Below, piece after piece: positions 2,721 to 62,200 of a DNA stretch of 64,000 nucleotides. Both the position numbers and the translations under genes were made by a program. Every line of letters begins with the position of its first letter. Positions within the stretch are counted from its first letter, which is position 1. Under the pieces are notes generated by a model. That model saw only the letters and a list, made by a program, of their open reading frames with translations, was not told where the DNA came from and ran no database searches. Where the stretch lies: NCBI GenBank assembly GCA_004431415.1, contig QPMI01000521.1:124001-188000 (forward strand). The letters are read 5' to 3'. This DNA comes from Cyanophora paradoxa CCMP329. Its lineage: Eukaryota; Plantae; Glaucophyta.

Positions 2721-3035
2721 GCCGCCCGGGCGCCTTGATGATTTCTCGTCCCTCAAGCTTCACTTTCTCCTGTCCAGTTCTAGCTGTGTAATTTTGTTTA
2801 GACACCGACAGTGCATGTTCCCTCTACAGCGTTTCAGTCATCCTGTGTGAGATTGACAATTAAAAAAGCAGCTTTTCAAAGCGAATATTGATCGAGCCAC
2901 AGATTGCTTGGGGCCCCACTGGCGCTCGGGATCCACATCGACATGAATATTACTCGTATACACATGATCTGCCTGTGCCTCTCCGATCCTATACAGCTCT
3001 GGCTAGCTAGATAGCTCGCTACGCGCAGGAAATCA

Positions 3036-5512
3036 TCAGAAGGTGTCCGCGGGGGCGGCCGAGGCGACGGGGAGGTCGGCGGGGGCGGCGGCAGGGGCGA
3101 CGGCCGAGGAGAGCGCCGGCGTGCTGGCGGCGACGGATATGCTGCCGGTCGAGACGCGCGCGGGGTCGTCGCGCCGCAGCTCGGGCCGCTCGCGCGGCGT
3201 AGGGCCGAGCTCCGGCGTCCCCGGCTTCCGGAGCGGCGGCAGCTCCCTCCGCTCGGGCGGGGCGGCGCGGCCGGCGCCGGGGACGCCGGGTCGAACTGCG
3301 CCGCGGCGGAGCTCGAGGGCGAGTGGGGCGTCATGCCCGGCAGCGGCATGAGCCGCCGGTCCGAAGGGCCCGCCTCCTGCCGCTCGCGCTCGCGCTCGCC
3401 CGAGGGCCCGCTGCGCCGTCCCGGGCCGGCGTGGAGGGCGCCTCGGCCGCGGCGAGGGCGCGCCTCGCCGAGGGCCGATCCCGCGCCGCCTCCTCCTCCT
3501 CGCCCCCGCCCCCCCTCCTGTCCACGCGCTGCATCTCCAGCTTGGGACTCGAAGGGTCCATCGCGACCTGCGCCCGGCCTCGCTCGCTCGCTCGCTCGCT
3601 CGGGCGGGGCGGGGCGGGGTGCGCGGCACCTTGAACTCGACGGCCTCGCGCTTGGCCTCCTCCCCGTTTGCGTTGGACGAGGAGGCGCCGCTGGCGCGCG
3701 ACGCGGCCTCCCCCGGGGACGACGAGGGCCCCGCCGCGCCCGCCCCGTCCGAAGGCGACGGCTGCGCGGCCAGCAGCTTCTCCTCCTCCGCCTTCTTCCG
3801 CGCCGCCTGCGGGGGGCGGTCAGCGGACGAGGCCGGCGGCGGCGCGCGCCGCCTGCTGGGCCTGCTGGAGACGCGCCTCCTCCTCCTCCTGCTTGCGCTG
3901 CGCCTTCATCGCCTCCACGCGCTTTCTCCTCTCCTCCTTCTCCCGCGCCTTCCTCTCCCGCTGCTCCTCCTGCGCCCCGCACCGCACCGCACCGCACCGC
4001 TGAGCGCCGGCCAGCGCTAGCCGGCAGCACTAGCCAGGGCAGGGCGGACCGTCTCGCGGGCGACCCGCTCATCGAGGGCCTTGTAGTCCGAGGAGATGGA
4101 GTCCACCATCCACTTCAGGCCTGCGCGCCGCCCGCGCAGTTAGCTCGAGGTCGGGCGGCGGGGAAGGAGGAGGAGCAGGCAGCGAGAGGGAGAGGAGAGG
4201 GAGGGAGGCGGGGGTGCTGTGCCCATCAAGCGAAGAGCGGGGCGCGGAGGCTGCGCGCCCCGCCCTTTAGAAAACGGGTCTAGATTCCGTATGCCCGCCC
4301 TGGGTTGTTTGGCAGGCCGATGCACAGCGGCCGCCAGACCGTAAGGGAGGGCTATAAAGCGAGGGGAGGGAGATAGGTGCTGTGCCCATCAAGCGAAGAG
4401 CGGGGCGCGGTGGTAACACGCCCCGCCCTTTAGAAAACGGGTCTAGATTTCGTTTGCCCGCCCTGGGTTGTTTGGCAGGCCGAAGCACAGCGGCCGCCAG
4501 ACCGTAAGGGAGGGCTATAAAGCGAGAGGAGGGAGATAGGTGCTGTGCCCATCAAGCGAAGAGCGGGGCGCGGTGGTAACACGCCCCGCCCTTTAGAAAA
4601 CGGGTCTAGATTTCGTTTGCCCGCCCTGGGTTGTTTGGCAGGCCGATGCACAGCGGCCGCCAGACCGTAAGGGAGGGCTCCGCCCAAAGAAGAGCGAGAG
4701 AAAGAGAAAGGAAGGAAGGAGGGCGGGGCGCGCGGGGCTCACCGAGCTTGACGTTCTCGTCGATCTGCTGGCCTTCCTTCGTGAGGGCCACGCACGCCTT
4801 GATGTTGTAGCGGCTCTGCTTGATCTCGGCCAGGCTCATCTTCACGGCCACGTCCGCCGGCGAGAGCCGCGCGGGGAGGTCCTGCTTGTTCGCGAAGCTG
4901 CGGGCGCCTGAGCGCTGGGCGGCGCGGAGGAAGGGCGCGGCGGGCGCACATCAGGATGGGCTTCCCGGCTAGGAGCGGCTCCTTGAGCGAGTTGAAGAGC
5001 GCGCTCTTCGAGTCCTCCAGGCGCGCCACGTCGGCCGAGTCCACCACATAGATTGCGCCGTGCACCTGCGCCGGGGGCGCAGCCCGGGTCAGCGCCCGCG
5101 CACGTAACGTTGGCGGGGCCAGCTGGGGGCACCTCGGCGTAGTAGCTATTCCAGATTGAGCGGATTCTTGGGCCGCCGCCCACATCGAAGATCTTCACTA
5201 CGTAGTTGCCGTTCCGCACTTCTTCTGTGTTGAAGCCCACGGTGGGGGCGACGAACTGGGCAATCTCTGCGGGAGTCGAGGGTGAGGCGCAGGCCAGGGC
5301 GCGGCCAAGAGAGGCTGCGAGCTTAGCCGGGGCACGAAGCAGCCCCCAGCAGAGCAGAGACAGCAATCTCGCGGAGGAACTGGCGCACCGCCCTTGAGCG
5401 CTTTCAGGATTGTGGTCTTGCCTGCGCCATCAAGCCCAATAAGGATGATGTTTATCCTGCGCTCCCGCTTCTTCTTGATCCAATTGTAAAAGTTCTTCGC
5501 CAGGCCGTACAT
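3036..5512 (-). CDS. ARL13: ARL13 (ARL13B-like ciliary small GTPase) with coiled coil and low-complexity C-tail
   Basis: MYGLAKNFYNWIKKK...GLDGAGKTT (G1), APTVGF (G2), DVGGG (G3 with the ARL13-type Gly in place of the catalytic Gln), FANKQD (G4), GLKWMV, then an E/K/R-rich coiled coil. The tail (3036-3567) needs frame changes, so the stop position is uncertain. Confidence 0.92.
4215..4353 (-). ncRNA. Box H/ACA snoRNA copy C (variant H box), intronic in ARL13
   Basis: Same guide strands and ACA (4220-4218). H-box position reads AUACGG. Hairpin-2 apex differs but pairing is kept. Confidence 0.7.
4378..4516 (-). ncRNA. Box H/ACA snoRNA copy B, intronic in ARL13
   Basis: Near-identical to copy A. 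H box AAACGA (4455-4450), ACA at 4383-4381. Differs in the hairpin-1 apical loop. Confidence 0.85.
4541..4679 (-). ncRNA. Box H/ACA snoRNA copy A, intronic in ARL13
   Basis: Hairpin, H box AAACGA (4618-4613), hairpin, ACA+3 nt. Both 3' guide strands start 14 nt upstream of their box. Pockets are complementary to LSU rRNA CUGGGUU-U-A-GACCGU and AAGCGAA-U-GA-UUAGAGG. Confidence 0.85.
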
Positions 5513-9566: not shown

Positions 9567-12247
9567 CTAGGCCTGGACCAGATTACTCTCGTCGGCGCCT
9601 TCAAGCGCCTGAGATGGCTCAGCGTCCACCCCGGGCTCCGTTTCCCCAGGGGGCCGCGGGGCGGGAGGGTCGCGAAACGGGGACGGCGAAACCGGCGCCG
9701 GTCGAACCTGTGACGTCCACCGGTCGAGCAGGTCGCCATTGCCGGGCAGCTGGGCAGCCCCCGCTTGGCGCTCCGATGGCTGGGCGCGAGGCCTCGGAGC
9801 GCCGCCGCCGCCGCGGAGGGGAATCACGACCCGCCCGCCGCCTCCGCCGAGGCCCAGCCCTTGCTTGAGCACGCTCACCTCCCGCTGCAGACTGCGCACC
9901 GGTTTGAAGCGGTGGGGGTCGGGTCGGGGCGGAGCGCGGAGCACCTCGTGGTGCGCTCGCGGTAGTCCTGAACGAGCTTCTCGAGGGCGGCGTTCCGCTC
10001 AGCGGCGGCGGCGGCCTCGGCGCGCTGGCGATCGCAGAAGGCGCGCAGCTGCTCGAAGGCGGACGCGGAGCGCGCGGCCTTCACGCGGTGGCGCTCGGCC
10101 CGCAGCTCGGCATCGCGAACGCGGGCCTCCAGCGCCGCCTCGCGCTGGCGAGCCTCGTCGGCGGCGACCTCGAGCGCGAGGGCGCGCTCCGCCAGCACGC
10201 AGGCGCGCAGCTCCCCGGCCGCCCCTTCCACCCGCGCCAGCTGCTCCCGCACCGCCCGCAGCTCCCCCTCCACCCGCTCCAGCTCTCCGTGCCGCCCCGC
10301 CCCCGCCTCCAGCCACGGCACGTACCCCCCGCTCAGCCAACACTTCGCAGCGGCGGCGGCGGCGGCGGCGGGCACACCGGGGCGGTGGCGATGGCGGCGG
10401 CAAGGTTGGGAGGAGGAGGACTTGCCTCACTGGAAGGCCGCAGCTTGAGCTCGAGGGCGGCGACGGCGGCCCCGCTCCCCGCGACGGCGCCCTCGATGCT
10501 CTCCAAGGCGCGTCGCAGCTGGGGTCGAGCCAGCGCGAGCGACTCTTCCGTGATGCGCCGGTACCGCGCGAGCCGCGTCGCCTGCGCCCCCAGCTCCTCC
10601 CGCAGGCCGTCCGCCTCCGCACGCACCGCCGCCGCCTCCTCCCGCTCCTGCGCGGCCAGCTCCTGCGCGGCCCGCTCGACAGGCGCCGTGCGTCGGCTGG
10701 GGAGAAGCTGAAGACGCACGCGGGCGGGGGCCGAGAGGGCGGCGTCGAGGGCGGCGCGGAGGAGGGCAGTGTCGGCCTCGCGCCGCTCCGCCTCGACCTC
10801 CTGCGGCGGCATCGGTCCGGCGGCGGGCGGCAGTGGAGTTCACGCACGAAGTAGGCGATCTGATCAAGAAGCGACTCGTTTGTTTCTTGCGCCTCCTGCC
10901 GCGCCGCCTCCAGCTCCGCCACAGGATCGCGCCCTGCACCGCCTCTCAGGCGGCGAGTAACAATGCCGCCCGCCTGCAGCTACGCACCGTCGAGCTCCGC
11001 GGCGGCCGCGGCAGGTGTCGCCTCCGCATGCCCGCCCGTCTCCTCGTGGAGCTTCCGGTCCAGCTTCGCCTGCATCGCCTCCAACAGCGCCTCCTGGTCC
11101 CGCAGCTTCCTCCGCAGCGCATTCGCCTCGGCACGCGCCTCCTCCGCGTGACCCTGCGCCCGTCTCTGCACATCCTCCGCGAGCTCGATCGTCCCCCACA
11201 ACGACCGGTGCTTCAGCACATCGAGTTGAGCAACAAATCTCCGCAGCCGCGCCTCGGCGCCGGCCGCCCGCCCCTCCGCCTCCACGCGCCGCGCCGCCTC
11301 CTCCCCGGCCCTCTTCTCTGCCACCTCGAGCCGCCGCCACATCGACTGCACCTCCGCCCTGGCGGCCGCCGCCTGCCGCTCCGCTTCGCCGCGCCGCGCC
11401 GCCTCTTCCCCAGCCGTCTGCGCCGCCGCGTCGAGCCGCTGCCGAAGCACCGCCAGCTCCGCCTCCAGCTGCATGTTCCTCCTCAAGAACCCGACGTTCC
11501 GCTCGTACCGCGTCCTTTGCTTCCGACGCCGCACCGCTGCCGCCCCGCACCCGTTAAGCACTTCCCGCGAGCTGACGAAGCGCCCAAGCAAGCGCACCGG
11601 ACTGGATTTTTGTTGCTGCGGCCCGCATCGCGATGTATACTTCGCGCCGCAGGTGCATGCGCACCACACTCTGCATGAGCGTAGCGCAACGGTTCTGGCG
11701 AACGGCACATGCGGCTGCGTGCGTATGTACTTCAACCGGCGAGCCTCGCCACCCGCAGTCCCGCGTCGGGCACCTGCTCCGCGGCCGGATCCATGCGCCA
11801 TCGTCATCAGAACTGGGCATGCGGAACTGGGCCGGGCGCCGACGCACCGGGCGCGGAGGTCGTTCACGAGGCGGGCGCGAAACGCCGAGCGGCAGATGCG
11901 CTCCTGGGCGACGACCTCGCGGCAGACGGGGCACTTCAGCTGGGCCCGCTGGTACTCGAACTGGAACGGGAAGCCCGACTCCCGCAAAACGCCCTCCGCG
12001 CACGTCCAGCACAGCGCGTGCTCGTTAGAGCACGGCAGCGAGGCCTGCGCGCGCGGGTGTCAGCGGTCGGCCTGCGCGGCCTGCGGTGTCAACGCAGGGG
12101 CCGTACCGGATCGCGCATGACGAACTTGCAGACCGGGCACACGAGCTGCAACGACTCGGCCCGCGCCTCCTCTCCATCGTCGAAGAGCTCGGATGGCCAG
12201 CCGCCGAAATCATCGCCAGCGCCAGCGGGGAGCGCCCCCCCTGCCAT
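9567..12247 (-). CDS. C3HC4 RING + TRAF-type Zn finger + IQ motifs + long coiled coil; putative E3 ligase
   Basis: Spliced: LVCPVCKFVMRDP|ASLPCSNEHALCWTC...LKCPVCRE (RING), then LRAR|CPTRDCGWRG...HAAAC, then ATLMQSVVRMHLRR and AATKIQS|AVRRRKQR (IQ-like), then E/A/R heptads. 3' end is approximate. Confidence 0.75.
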
Positions 12248-27600: not shown

Positions 27601-30600
27601 GTCTTGCCAGTCGCCGTCGCCCGCCTGCGCACACGTGCGGGGCCGCATGTGAATACCGTGCGCGAGCCCGGCCGGAGACTTCACGCAGCGCGGCGCACGT
27701 CTGCGGGCCGGGCGGCGTGGCGTTGAAGCCGGGCCCGGGGAAGAGCAGCATGAACATCGCGAAGCCGTCGGTGAGGACGCGGAAGCTCGCCGGGACCTTC
27801 GTCGACGCCAGCGCGCCCTTCGCGACCGCGAAAGAAAAGCATCAGGTGGGGCGGCTCGCGAATGGGGGGCGGGCGAATGCGGCTTCGCGCGGACCACGAT
27901 GCAGAGGGCCTGGGCGTGGTTGAGGAGGGCGAGGGAGCTCGAGTTGTTGGAGCACTCGCGCGGCGGGTTCTTCTTCTTCTCCTCCTCCTCCTTCTGCTTC
28001 TTCTCCTCCTCCTCCTTCTTGCGCCGCTCGTCCTCGTTCTGCTCCTCCTGCTCCTCCTCCTTCTTGTTCTGGTTCGCGGATGTCACGGTCTGCGGTCCGT
28101 TCGGTCCGCCGCCGCCGCCGCCGCCCGCGCCGCCGCCGCCCGCGCCGCCGCCGCCCGCGCCGCCGCCGCCCGCGCCGCCGCCGCCCGCGCCGCCGCCGCC
28201 CGCGCCGCCGCCGCCCGCGCCGCCGCCGCCCGCGCCGCCGCCGCCCGCGCCGCCGCCGCCCGCGCCGCCGCCGCCTGCACCGCCGCCGCCCGCTCCGCCG
28301 CCGCCTGCACCGCCGGCACCGCTGGCGCCGCCGGCGCCGCCGGCGCCACCCGCGCCTCCCGCGCCGCCGGCGCCGCCCGCGCCTCCCGCTGCACCACCGG
28401 CACCGCCTGCTCCGCCCGCTGCGCCGCCTGCGCCGCCAGCACCACCCGCTGCGCCGCCTGCGCCGCCAGCACCACCCGCTGCACCACCCGCACCGCCCGC
28501 GCCGCCCGCAGCGCCGCCGGCACCGCCCGCTGCGCCTCCGGCACCGCCCGCTGCGCCTCCGCACCGCCCGCTGCGCCCCTGCCGCTCCTCCAGCGCCTCC
28601 CGCAGCGCCACCCGCGCCGCCAGCGGCCCCGGCGCCTCCAGCTGCGCCGCCGGCCCCCCTGCGGCGCCTCCAGCCGCGCCCGCGCCTCCTGCGGCGCCGC
28701 CTGCACCGCCGGCTGCGCCCGCGGCGCCACCGGCGGCGCCGCCCGCGCCTCCAGCGGCGCCCGCCGCCCCGCCTGCGCCGCCAGCCGCCCCCGCGGCGCC
28801 GCCGGCCGCCCCGGCAGCACCGCCAGCGGCGCCAGCAGCGCCAGCAGCTCCCGCTGCTCCAGCGCCGCCAGCTGCGCCTGCAGCTGCGCCTGCGGCACCG
28901 CCAGCCGCCCCTGCAGCACCCGCGGCCGCGCCAGCCGCTGCGCCTCCTGCACCGGCAGCTGCCCCAGCAGCTGCACCTGCCGCGCCCGCAGCAGCTGCAG
29001 CCCCCGCTGCTCCACCGGCAGCGCCGGCAGCACCGGCCACGGCTCCGCCAACCGTGCCGGCAACACCCGCTGCAACAGCAGCAGCTGTCCCGCCGGCAAC
29101 GTACTGGGCAGCGGTCATCGTCGGCTCCTCCTGCTTGTCTTGCGTGTTGTCAGCCGAGCCTGAGCCCGCGGTGGCGCTTGTGGCGGCTTCGGTGCTGCTG
29201 GCTGTGCCGGTTGTTCCAGCTGTTCCCGCCGTGGCGCTGGTGGCGCCGGCCGCCCCACCCGAAGCCGTGGCTCCAGCCGCTCCGGCCGTGGCTCCAGCCG
29301 CTCCGGCCGTGGCTCCGGCGGCTCCGGCCGTGGCTCCGGCCGCGCCTGCAGCCGTAGCAGCCGACGCGGCGACACCGGAGGCGACAGAGCTCGAGACGCC
29401 GGCAGCTATGCTCTTGAGGACGCCCGTCACAATGGAGTGCGCGATCGCGGCGACGATCAGTGCCGAGACGACTTGCGCCGCCTGCTGCGCCATCTCTGGC
29501 GACACGGACTCCTGCAATACTGCAGGCGGCAGCGCGTCAGCGCAGAGCAGACGAGCGAGATGCAGACGCTGCGCACGTATGGTCTTTTTGCGGCGGTAGA
29601 GGGGATCGCCAACGGCGACGGTGGTCGTCGCGTTGGCAGTGCCGCCACGGTCGTCAGTGACGGTGAGGTTGAAGAGCCACTCGCCCCCGCCGACCAGCGT
29701 CATCAAAGCCCAAGTCGCCGTCGTGTTCCTCCCCTGCCTGAACCTGACCGTGCTCGGCCCCGACATCTGCCGCCAGACCGCCGATGCGATGTACCCATCC
29801 GAATCGGCGAAGAAGGCGACCGTCGTGAGGAACCGCGTCTCGTTCAGGGCTGTCGTGTTCGTCGCGTTCACTGCGATGATGTACATCTCCGCCAGGCCCG
29901 AGATCGTGGGCGGCACGTTGGGAAGCGGCGTCGGCGCCAGCTCCGTCGACGACGTGTTCTGCCTGACGATGACGGGGTCCAGCAGGATGGCGACGGACGA
30001 GACGTTGGAGAGGCCTCCGGAGTCATCCGACACGATCAAAGAGAAGACGCAGACGCCCTTGGCCAGGACGGGGAACGAGCAGATGCCGAACTGCTGCGTC
30101 GTGTTCAGCTGTGCAGTCGTCAGCGGGCAGCGCCCCAAGGCGAGATCGGCCGTGTTCGTCGAACTGTCCACGCGCCAACGGAACCCGATGACAAACTGCG
30201 GCAGAAAGATCAGCGCTTCGAATCGAGCGCAACCGACCGCGCGAGCCGCACCCCGTCCTCGTCGGTGGAGTCGAGGCCGTCGAGGGAGCTGACGGGCCCA
30301 CGGATGGCGAGCCGGCCGTCGACGGCGAAGTAGAACGGCGGGCGGACCGCCAGCCTGGACTTGGGCATGACGTTGCCGTCGCGGGGCAGCACCGTCTTGT
30401 TGAGGACCTCGACGGCGGACCCCGGGAAGAAGGAGACGAGGACGTCCGGCTGGAACCCGTCCATGAGGGTCTTCAGGCCGTCGGCCTCGGCGATGCTGGA
30501 CGAGGAGACGTTGACGCGGAGGACGACGGACCCCCGGAACGCCAGGATGGAGCCGATGCGGAAGGACTCGACGCCGATCGAGTTGGCGACCGACTGCGTG

Positions 30601-59255: not shown

Positions 59256-62200
59256 ATGCCCAGCAGCCGCTCTAGCGGCGCTCGCGCGTCGGCCGCGCGG
59301 CCCGAGCTGCCAGCGCGCGCAATCGACTCGGCGAGGCAGTTCCTGGCATCGGCAGCGGGGACGTTCGGCAGCAGCGGCTCGACTCCCGCCGCTCACGGGG
59401 TGCGCGCCGGGCCTGCCAGTGCGTGCGGCCAGCCGTCTGGCCGGCGCCGCGCGGCGCACGTCGTGCTGGTGGCCGAGCGCACGCGTAAGGCCAGCGGGCG
59501 CCTGCCGCGCTCTTTCTCCGCCGCCCGGCACGGCCTCGCTTTCCAGCGGGCCGCGCACGCTGCCGGCGAAGCAAAGAAGGACGAGGCGAAGCCGGGGGAA
59601 GCGAAGGAGGCGGCGAAGGATGAGAAGGAGGAGGAGCAGAAGAACCCTCGCCAGGCTGCGGCTCTGGCCATCACGGAGACGCCGCCCGCCAAGCTGGCGC
59701 CCTCGGCGTGGGAGGTGCGGCCCCGCTGACCCGCCCCGCACAACGTTGCCCAGATCCGACGCCCGTCCCGCAGAACGTCATCTTCTCGGCGACGGCGCCC
59801 ATGATCGCCGTTCTGTTCACGAACGTGCGCCGCCGCCCCCGCCGCCCGCCCGCCCGCGCCTGCGCCTGCGCTGACCTCTCGGGTCTTCCGTAGCCCTTCG
59901 ATGTGGCCAAGGCGCGCGAGCGCGAGCCCTCGGAAGGTTTCGCATACCCCTCACGCGCCCCTCCCGCAGACGCGCATGCAGCTCCAGGGCGAGCTTATGC
60001 GCGCCGGGGAGGTTCGATTTCGCCCCGCGCGCCGCCCTGATCGGCTGCGGCTGAGCCGGGAGGGGGTACAGGGGCGCAAGTTCGCGAACGTGTTCGATTG
60101 CCTCATCAAGACCGCCAAGTACGAGGGCTTCGCCGGCCTCCAGAAGGGTACGGGATTCGACGGGGAGAGGTGGGGGTACGGCGGGCCGAGGGGGGTACGC
60201 CGCGCAGGCCTCGGGAGCATGCTGGTGCGGGAGGCGCTTATTAATAGCCTCCGGCTGGGCACCTTCGAGCCCATACTCCACCGCATCCACGACCGCGACC
60301 TGGGGTACAGCCCTCCGCCCGCCTTCCCCCCCCCCCCCCCCCCCCCCCCCCCACCTCTCTTTGACCCCATCCTGCAGCCCGGCGCCCATCTTCAAGAAGC
60401 TCATCGCGGGCGGCATCGCTGGGTGCGCTGTACCCCCGAGCCCGCGACCAACTCTCTAGGGGAATCCGCTGCTCTTTTAAGCCAAGTTAAGAATACGAGT
60501 TTGAGCCCTGAAGCTTGACGCTCGGGCCGGGGGCAGGGCGCTGGGCTCCTTCGCGGCGAACCCCGTCGAGCTCGTCAAGACGCGCCTCCAGGTGCCCCCT
60601 CTCTGAATTAAAAGGGCCCCCCGCGGGACTCGAACCCGGTCCGGCTGGCAGAGCCGGGCGAGCTCGAACATCGCCGTGGGCAACCAGTTCGAGTACTCCG
60701 TGCGCCCCGCCCGCCCCGCCCCGCCCCGCCCCGCCCCGCCCCGCCCGCCCCGCCCCGCCCACCCGCCCGCCCCGCCCCGCCCGCCCCGCCCCGCCCCGCC
60801 CGCGCCCCGCCCCCTCGACCGCGCCTTAGCGCCGCCCCTCCTGCCTGTGGAGAGCCGCATAGACATAAAGAAGCCTGGAGGCAAAGGCACAAAGAACAAG
60901 CGCAAGGAGCTCGGAGGCGGGGCGCTGAGGGCGGGGCGGGGCGGGGGCGCAGGGCCTGCTGGACGCGGCGGGGAGCATCGTGCGCGAGAACGGCGTCACC
61001 GGCCTCTGGAAGGTCCGCCTTTCGCCCCGAGTCCCCGCCAAGCCCCGCCAGGCCCCGGCCCGTCAGGCCCGACGCTGCTGCTGCGAGGGGGGGGCCGCCT
61101 CACCAGCCAGCGCCGCCGTCTTTCTCTGCGCGACCCTTGCTCCGCTCACGCGTCCATCTCGCGCGCAGGGCGCGAGCGCCGGCGTGCTGCGGTCCGTCGT
61201 CGGCAACGCCACCATGCTCACCACCTACCAGCAGGCCCGCCTTGGCTTCGCCCCGCTCCGCTTCCCTTCCCATCGCTTCCCTTCCCTTCCCTTCGCTTGG
61301 CTTCGCCGCATATAGGTCTTACCTTCGCTAAGCCCAGCCCGGCTTAGCTTCCCTTCCCTCCGCTTAGCTTTACGTCCGCTCCCTTAGCTTAGCTTCGCTC
61401 TGACGTCCGCTCCCTTAGCTTAGCTTCGCTCCGCTTAGCTCCGCTTCCCTTGCCTTTGCTTCGCTTGGCTCCGCTTGGCTTAGCTCCGCTCCGCTTAGCT
61501 CCGCTTGGCTCCGCTCCGCTTAGCTTCGCTTCGCTTGGCTTAGCTTCGGCGCAGGCGAGGGAGTGGTGCGTGCACGGGGCGAGGCTGCGGGACTCGCCGG
61601 CCGCCAGCGTCGCCTCCTCCCTCGCCGCCGGCCTCGTCTCCTCCCTCGGTAGCCCCCCCGCGCCCCCGCGCCCCCCACCCCCCCCACCCCCCCACCCCCC
61701 CGGGCCCCTGCGCACCCTTCAGAAAACTTCTCTGGTTAAAGAAGAATTTTAAGCCACGGAATTAGTTAAAGAAGGGTTTCTAGCCACGGAATTAGTTTAC
61801 GATCGCGAGTCTGAGATTTGCGGGATGGATCGTGGATTTATGCATTGGCTCCTTGGGCTTCCTCTTACTTCCTAGCCACGGATTTAGCTAACGAGTCTGA
61901 GATCGATGCCTCCGCTCCTCCCTCGTGGATTTATGCCTTCACGCTTTCCTCTCACTTCCTTCCTTCGAACCGCAGCGCTCAACCCCGTGGACGTCGTGCG
62001 CGCCCCGCCCCGCCGGACGCCCCGCGCGGCCCCGCTCAGCTGAGCCGGGCGGCTGTGGGCGGCAGGTGCGGACGCGGCTGTACAACCAGCGGTACTCGCA
62101 GGACGGGCGCGGGGCGACCTACTCCGGCATCCCCGACGCCGTCTGGTCCGCCCGGGGCGAAGCTAGAGGCGGGGGGGGCCGGGACGCCCGGGAAGGGAAG

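Follow-up and report, generated by a model that had tools for sequence, protein, structure and literature searches.

Three probable box H/ACA snoRNA gene copies in an intron of an ARL13-type gene of Cyanophora paradoxa, with two predicted pockets for large subunit rRNA pseudouridylation

The window studied here is a stretch of 64,000 nucleotides (nt) of the glaucophyte Cyanophora paradoxa CCMP329 (GenBank assembly GCA_004431415.1, contig QPMI01000521.1, positions 124,001 to 188,000 of the forward strand), and all positions are counted from its first letter. Near its beginning it holds a tandem array that most probably represents three gene copies of a single box H/ACA small nucleolar RNA (snoRNA). 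The copies lie in an intron of an ARL13-type small-GTPase gene, and each carries two putative pockets for pseudouridylation of the large subunit (LSU) rRNA. This reading is based on the repeat, the fold, the boxes and their spacing, the intron, the identity of the host gene and the specificity of the complementarity to rRNA, all of which were computed here.

Tandem Repeats Finder reported a tandem repeat at 4213-4679 with a period of 163, 2.9 copies and 96% matches, and a 23-nt probe from the snoRNA unit was found three times in the window against zero expected. No second array of this kind was found in the 64-kb window. The three units, named A, B and C (Table 1), share an identical minimum-energy fold, with energies between −67.9 and −69.5 kcal/mol and z-scores between −3.5 and −4.2. 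It is made up of hairpin 1, a hinge, hairpin 2 and a tail, and each hairpin contains an internal loop that provides a pocket. Hairpin 1 is formed by a lower stem of 9 positions (with one U/C mismatch), the internal loop and an upper stem of 9 bp from which a single U bulges. After the hinge of 14 nt, hairpin 2 follows with a 6-bp lower stem, its internal loop and a GC-rich upper stem of 12-14 bp, and each unit ends in the same 7-nt tail, C-ACA-GCA.

In units A and B, the H box AAACGA fits the ANANNA consensus and stands directly 3' of hairpin 1, while the ACA box comes 1 nt after hairpin 2 in all three units, with 3 nt (GCA) between ACA and the unit end. Canonical H/ACA RNAs hold the target uridine 14-16 nt upstream of the H or ACA box. 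Here, the spacing is 14 nt for both hairpins, from the first base of the 3' guide strand at unit position 48 to the H box at 62, and from 120 to the ACA box at 134. An earlier note on this DNA, made from the letters alone, had described minus-strand units of about 139 nt built as hairpin, H box, hairpin, ACA and GCA, with pyrimidine-rich spacers of 24 nt, a distance of 14 nt from both 3' guide strands to their boxes, an AAC bulge in pocket 1 and an A-A mismatch in pocket 2. The common fold and the sequence agree with that description in all these respects. The same note had assigned the H box AAACGA to every unit, which holds for units A and B and fails for unit C, where AUACGG was found.

The minus strand was chosen because of the boxes, the orientation of the host gene and the complementarity to rRNA, and not because of the folding energy. 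The H and ACA boxes are present on the minus strand only. The plus strand of the units folds about as well as the minus strand, and folding energy was rejected as a test of strand for that reason. Apical loop 1 has the sequence CUGUGCAU, changed to CUGUGCUU in unit B, and apical loop 2 the sequence UUACCAC, changed to CAGCCUC in unit C. The UGAG motif (CAB box) typical of small Cajal body-specific RNAs is absent from the apical loops of all units and the best targets were found in LSU rRNA, both of which speak against an identity of that type.

Table 1. Positions of the array, its boxes and guide strands, and the host gene in the window
Feature	Position	Strand	Description	Basis
snoRNA unit A	4541-4679	minus	139 nt, canonical H box	fold and alignment
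snoRNA unit B	4378-4516	minus	139 nt, canonical H box	fold and alignment
snoRNA unit C	4215-4353	minus	139 nt, AUACGG at the H-box position	fold and alignment
Spacer A-B	4517-4540	minus	24 nt, 21 of 24 pyrimidines	
Spacer B-C	4354-4377	minus	24 nt, 21 of 24 pyrimidines, one change relative to spacer A-B	
H box AAACGA	4613-4618 (unit A); 4450-4455 (unit B)	minus	unit positions 62-67, fits ANANNA	
ACA box	4544-4546 (unit A); 4381-4383 (unit B); 4218-4220 (unit C)	minus	followed by GCA	
Pocket 1, 5' guide strand	4663-4668 (unit A)	minus	ACGGUC, predicted to pair with GACCGU downstream of the target U	duplex −7.9 kcal/mol
Pocket 1, 3' guide strand	4626-4632 (unit A)	minus	AACCCAG, predicted to pair with CUGGGUU upstream of the target U	duplex −9.3 kcal/mol
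Pocket 2, 5' guide strand	4593-4599 (unit A)	minus	UUUCUAA, predicted to pair with UUAGAGG with two G-U pairs	duplex −4.0 kcal/mol
Pocket 2, 3' guide strand	4554-4560 (unit A)	minus	UUCGCUU, predicted to pair with AAGCGAA upstream of the target U	duplex −7.1 kcal/mol
Host intron, holding the array	4121-4742	minus	622 nt, GT...AG	spliced RNA contig of run X1
Upstream host exon	4743-4897	minus	C-terminal part of the Arf-like GTPase domain	spliced contig and translation of the open reading frame
Downstream host exon, start	4049-4120	minus		spliced contig and list of open reading frames

The targets of the two pockets were sought in rDNA from metagenomes. A scan with a 31-nt probe for the region of site 1 (the predicted target of pocket 1) gave 119 rDNA loci, and the analysis was limited to loci with an LSU of about 3.3 kb, no contig being taken as human. 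The 17-nt sequence of site 2 (that of pocket 2) was found 1,910-2,511 nt upstream of site 1 in 17 loci. Three rDNAs with complete eukaryotic SSU, 5.8S and LSU rRNAs, as confirmed with Rfam (L001, L011 and L041), were then scanned at every uridine, with pairs scored outward from the junction and with the U and the next base left unpaired. For pocket 1, the top site was AGCUGGGUU[U]AGACCGU with a score of 34 from 7 + 6 Watson-Crick pairs, the next best sites scoring 13-22. For pocket 2, it was UAAAGCGAA[U]GAUUAGAGG with a score of 27-29 from 7 + 7-8 pairs including G-U, the next best scoring 18-20. The top site of each pocket was identical in the three rDNAs. When the guide strands were shuffled, scores as high as those observed arose in 0 of 1000 trials for pocket 1 and in 23 of 1000 for pocket 2. 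Both rRNA targets proposed in the earlier note were thus recovered as the top-scoring sites by a wide margin.

From their sequence contexts, the target of pocket 1 is predicted to lie in the peptidyl-transferase-centre region of LSU rRNA, at the third U of GGGUUUAG, and that of pocket 2, also in LSU rRNA, at the U of GCGAAUGA (GCGAAUGAUUAG). The pockets were fixed on these two uridines because the base identities tabulated for Arabidopsis 25S rRNA fit the contexts, namely A2936, C2938, G2942, U2943, U2945 and C2949 for site 1 and G1002, A1006 and U1013 for site 2 (Streit and Schleiff 2021, Supplementary Table 2, PMC8351944). In the same table, U1013 is a mapped site with snoR81 as the guide, equivalent to human U1731 and yeast U1004, and U2945 is a mapped site with the guide given as 'nd', equivalent to human U4502 and with no yeast counterpart. 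In human 28S rRNA, pseudouridine was found at 100% at both 4502 and 1731; position 4500 carried m3U and the U at 4501 was unmodified (Taoka et al. 2018, PMC6182160). According to the literature consulted, human 28S-4502 has no assigned guide. The equivalent of the site-1 uridine in yeast would be 25S U2955, which is unmodified there. We take the same uridine to be U2586 of E. coli 23S rRNA, which would place it beside the universally conserved catalytic-centre bases U2584 and U2585.

The table also bears out the equation of the pocket 2 target with yeast 25S Psi1004 made in the earlier note. The catalytic-centre target is not specific to the lineage, pseudouridine being known at human 28S-4502 and Arabidopsis 25S-2945. 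What is unusual about site 1 is that no guide is assigned to it in human or Arabidopsis, and not the modification itself.

The position of the array in an ARL13 intron, which had also been claimed, was confirmed by a spliced contig and by protein matches. Four public sequencing runs (X1, X6, X7 and X9) were available as Logan contigs, in which RNA ends and levels are not visible. Since one contig of X1 is spliced, this run was taken to be RNA. The contig aligns at 4742-4897 and then at 4119-4049 without a gap, with one ambiguous base at the junction, and the intron has GT at 4742-4741 and AG at 4122-4121. The reading frame is intact across the splice junction (...VKLG/LKWMVD..., where the slash marks the junction).

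The host exons were searched singly and not as a joined protein. The best matches of exon 2 in the PDB were Chlamydomonas Arl13B (4m9q_A and 5di3_B; E about 5e-9), with an identity of about 55% as counted from the printed alignment, while exon 1 matched Arf-like P-loops in general. ARL13 proteins are Arf-like GTPases in which glycine replaces the catalytic glutamine (DxGGG motif), and DVGGG of exon 2 aligns with DLGGG of Arl13B. The exon after the intron (2876-4120, minus strand) is one open frame that encodes a Lys/Glu-rich coil followed by a long Pro/Arg/Ala-rich tail, an arrangement that presumably corresponds to the coiled coil and the proline-rich C-terminus of ARL13B proteins. Judged by sequence, the host is a cilia gene of the ARL13 type, coding for a small GTPase, with the array in sense orientation.

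Coverage of the array by the public runs was also studied. In X1, the depth was 5.7 on the exons and 3.1 on a 193-nt contig that runs from unit A through the spacer into the next unit, and it was 0 on the unique intron flanks at 4124-4216 and 4682-4741. Coverage of the array with bare flanks fits a stable intron-derived RNA. X6, which consists of very short records and is RNA by guess, gave one record with adapter on both sides of an insert of about 105 nt, lying inside unit B at about 4394-4498. Its final 10 aligned bases resemble Illumina adapter and the bounds of the insert were set accordingly; the host exons were uncovered in this run. Unit A is also covered by a 141-nt contig in X7 and X9, two DNA-like runs with coverage of the unique intron flank. 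The ratio of unit to flank depth was 3x in X7 and about 10x in X9, and given this disagreement it was rejected as an estimate of copy number. Overall, the RNA evidence for a mature snoRNA is suggestive but falls short of proof.

The contigs of X1, X7 and X9 (4487-4679) have six differences from the window in common, at 4518, 4520, 4536, 4587, 4613 and 4617. The resulting variant unit has an AUACGG hinge together with an upper stem of hairpin 2 that is mismatched by a G-to-U change, a combination that was found in none of the three copies of the window. Either the strain differs from that of the assembly or further copies exist elsewhere in the genome.

Several observations weigh against the assignment, and the first of them concern the pockets and their targets. 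Pocket 1 is irregular. The unpaired AAC at 4633-4635 (unit positions 45-47) separates the 3' guide strand from the upper stem and has to bulge out, and two of the seven pairs upstream of the target invade the top of the lower stem, which must open for them. A register without the AAC bulge was rejected, as it gives only 3 pairs and a box distance of 17 nt. In pocket 2, an A-A mismatch lies beside unpaired bases and two of the pairs are G-U. In addition, complementarity was scored on eukaryotic rDNAs from metagenomes, and site 2 is not invariant among them. Of 31 rDNA copies examined, 24 had a recognisable 19-mer (up to 4 substitutions) and 7 had none, and the exact 19-mer was present in 15 of those 24; locus L034, from a gut metagenome, gave no match in the first co-occurrence scan and was left out of this tally. 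In 3 of the 24 copies, GAUUAGAAG replaces GAUUAGAGG at site 2. This variant turns one G-U pair of the guide into A-U, and the organism's own rRNA could therefore pair better with pocket 2.

It is also documented that strong pairing of a guide does not always lead to modification in vivo (PMC8522698). SNORA71 can pair at human 28S-4502, yet it left the substrate unmodified in yeast (Deryusheva et al., PMC8522698; see also PMC6984369). With such a precedent at precisely this site and with the irregular geometry of pocket 1 (the 3-nt bulge and the invasion of the lower stem), the units could be genuine H/ACA snoRNAs in which pocket 2 alone is active, pocket 1 being an orphan or inactive. We regard this as unlikely, because the match of pocket 1 is the stronger and more specific one, with 13 Watson-Crick pairs and none of 1000 shuffles reaching its score, its spacing is the canonical 14 nt, and its target is a fully modified pseudouridine in human that has been mapped in Arabidopsis as well.

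A second group of adverse points concerns the copies and their expression. A likeness of 96% that includes the spacers denotes recent duplication and says little on selection; conservation between copies was rejected as a signal of selection, as the spacers are equally conserved. Unit B differs from unit A by a single base in apical loop 1, while unit C has an altered apical loop 2 and a G in place of the final A of the H-box position. Altogether, there are 8 variable positions among the copies, which fall in apical loops or the hinge save for one change of a G-U to a G-C pair, and none in the guide strands or the lower stems. The H-box variation lies at unit positions 63 and 67. In unit C, AUACGG (4287-4292) does not fit ANANNA and no alternative ANANNA was found in the hinge of this unit, and the variant unit of the public runs has AUACGG in place of the canonical H box as well. 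As for the RNA, Logan contigs break at repeat borders, so that a mature RNA of about 140 nt is not visible there, and a depth of about 3 in X1 could equal about 1x unspliced pre-mRNA multiplied by three collapsed copies, enough to pass the threshold of the assembler.

These points would be expected if the array gave no stable functional RNA and its transcription were confined to the pre-mRNA, the units being either an intronic satellite of recent amplification or snoRNA-like pseudogenes in decay. Equal conservation of copies and spacers carries no signal of selection, the H box is damaged in one copy and in the public-run variant, and the coverage in X1 is explicable by unspliced precursor with collapsed copies. 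Nevertheless, an origin of this kind seems improbable. Two independent pockets match known pseudouridylation sites at the canonical distance with the boxes correctly placed, the substitutions avoid stems and guides, and X6 contains unit sequence with zero host exon.

Searches with the snoRNA families of Rfam count against the assignment too, since they gave no match in the window at the gathering score and none within 4100-4800 even at E up to 10. Absence of an Rfam match is usual for fast-evolving H/ACA RNAs and is compatible with homology at the family level.

That the repeats encode micro-ORFs or GC-rich hairpins acting as precursors of small RNAs is scarcely credible: repeated open reading frames of 41-85 amino acids run through the units on both strands and hairpin 2 has a 14-bp GC-rich upper stem, but the frames are a by-product of the repeat and are not host coding sequence because splicing removes the entire array from the mRNA, and the matches to Rfam miRNA families are weak (14-20 bits against thresholds of 60-99).

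For the favoured reading of three H/ACA snoRNA gene copies, the following route from gene to modification is proposed, in which the assembly and spacer-cleavage steps draw on what is known of polycistronic snoRNAs in plants and yeast. As expected from established knowledge of H/ACA ribonucleoproteins, RNA polymerase II would transcribe the host pre-mRNA, and the Cbf5/dyskerin-Nop10-Nhp2 core would bind each 139-nt unit co-transcriptionally, with Gar1 joining later. Once the intron is spliced out of the host pre-mRNA, the pyrimidine-rich spacers would be cut and exonucleolytic trimming would follow, down to protein-protected units that end 3 nt after ACA. At least one endonucleolytic cut per spacer would be required, since trimming that starts at the ends of the intron would not by itself release an internal unit. 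The mature RNA would then accumulate. Pocket 1, in the H-box hairpin, would pair with CUGGGUU and GACCGU on either side of the third U of GGGUUUAG. Pocket 2, in the ACA hairpin, would pair with AAGCGAA and UUAGAGG, which flank the U equivalent to human 28S-1731. Each of these uridines would presumably be modified.

Around the units, a short motif CUCUCGCU (CCCUCGCU in one spacer) is repeated on the minus strand, and its distance to the unit ends varies. It precedes unit A (4680-4700), occurs in each of the two spacers (4517-4540 and 4354-4377) and follows unit C (4180-4214). The motif may serve as a processing signal, may have been duplicated along with the units, or may be ordinary pyrimidine-rich sequence. 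Other repeats of the window include a long GC-rich tandem repeat at 28106-28813, with a 9-nt unit CGCCGCCCG in about 74 copies that can also be read with a unit of 30 nt. Shorter repeats, likewise GC-rich, are present at 60703-60813, and 11247-11443 holds 1.9 copies of a 105-nt repeat.

With three units inside a single spliceosomal intron, all in the orientation of the host gene, the array is an intronic polycistronic cluster. Such snoRNA clusters have been reported in Chlamydomonas reinhardtii and land plants (Chen et al. 2008, Genetics 179:21, as cited in PMC7671301 and PMC8226300). As far as these citing papers describe them, the clusters have in common with the Cyanophora array several snoRNA units, often near-identical isoforms from tandem duplication, in a single intron of a protein-coding gene and in sense orientation to it. 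Their units are set free from a polycistronic precursor, which would be expected of the Cyanophora array by analogy. The lineage differs, Cyanophora being a glaucophyte, and exon 2 of the host is about 55% identical to Chlamydomonas Arl13B. The tandem intronic layout is not new, being common in algae and plants.

The guide strands were not found in C. reinhardtii H/ACA hairpins among 200 of the 621 supplementary files of PMC5122169. A 7-mer match to CrACA22 in that source is coincidental, as it lies in the lower stem, which covaries among CrACA22 copies. Numeric matches in the Ostreococcus snoRNA tables (PMC7671301) proved to be read counts or targets of box C/D snoRNAs.

Pocket 2 is predicted to act on the same conserved pseudouridine as yeast snR5 and Arabidopsis snoR81, from which the Cyanophora RNA differs in that homology by sequence or Rfam is undetectable. 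We take snR5 to be the guide of yeast 25S-1004. It presumably guides 25S-1124 as well, whereas the partner pocket here faces the catalytic-centre site. With regard to the orphan site at human 28S-4502 and Arabidopsis 25S-2945, pocket 1 would leave exactly this uridine unpaired, with 7 + 6 pairs in the flanks and a box spacing of 14 nt. In contrast to human and Arabidopsis, a candidate guide is thus at hand here, and from the sequence the modification is predicted.

No published snoRNA catalogue for Cyanophora or glaucophytes was found in a literature search, and the array adds a first data point on glaucophyte snoRNAs. Its main value lies in pocket 1 as a candidate guide, from a deep-branching alga, for the orphan catalytic-centre pseudouridine. 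This site is of interest because a conserved and known modification lacks an assigned guide in human and Arabidopsis, the two best-studied multicellular systems. As yeast is without the site-1 modification, expression of the unit there permits a direct test at 25S-U2955, and the design of pocket 1 can be used as a search template for other genomes. Whether this RNA is the first natural guide found for the pseudouridine equivalent to human 28S-4502 and Arabidopsis 25S-2945 can be put forward only tentatively, and on balance we consider it doubtful. If true, the modification of site 1 would be snoRNA-guided and ancient, and the failure of standard searches to find counterparts in plants and animals could be due to the irregular pocket, with its three unpaired nucleotides by the upper stem.

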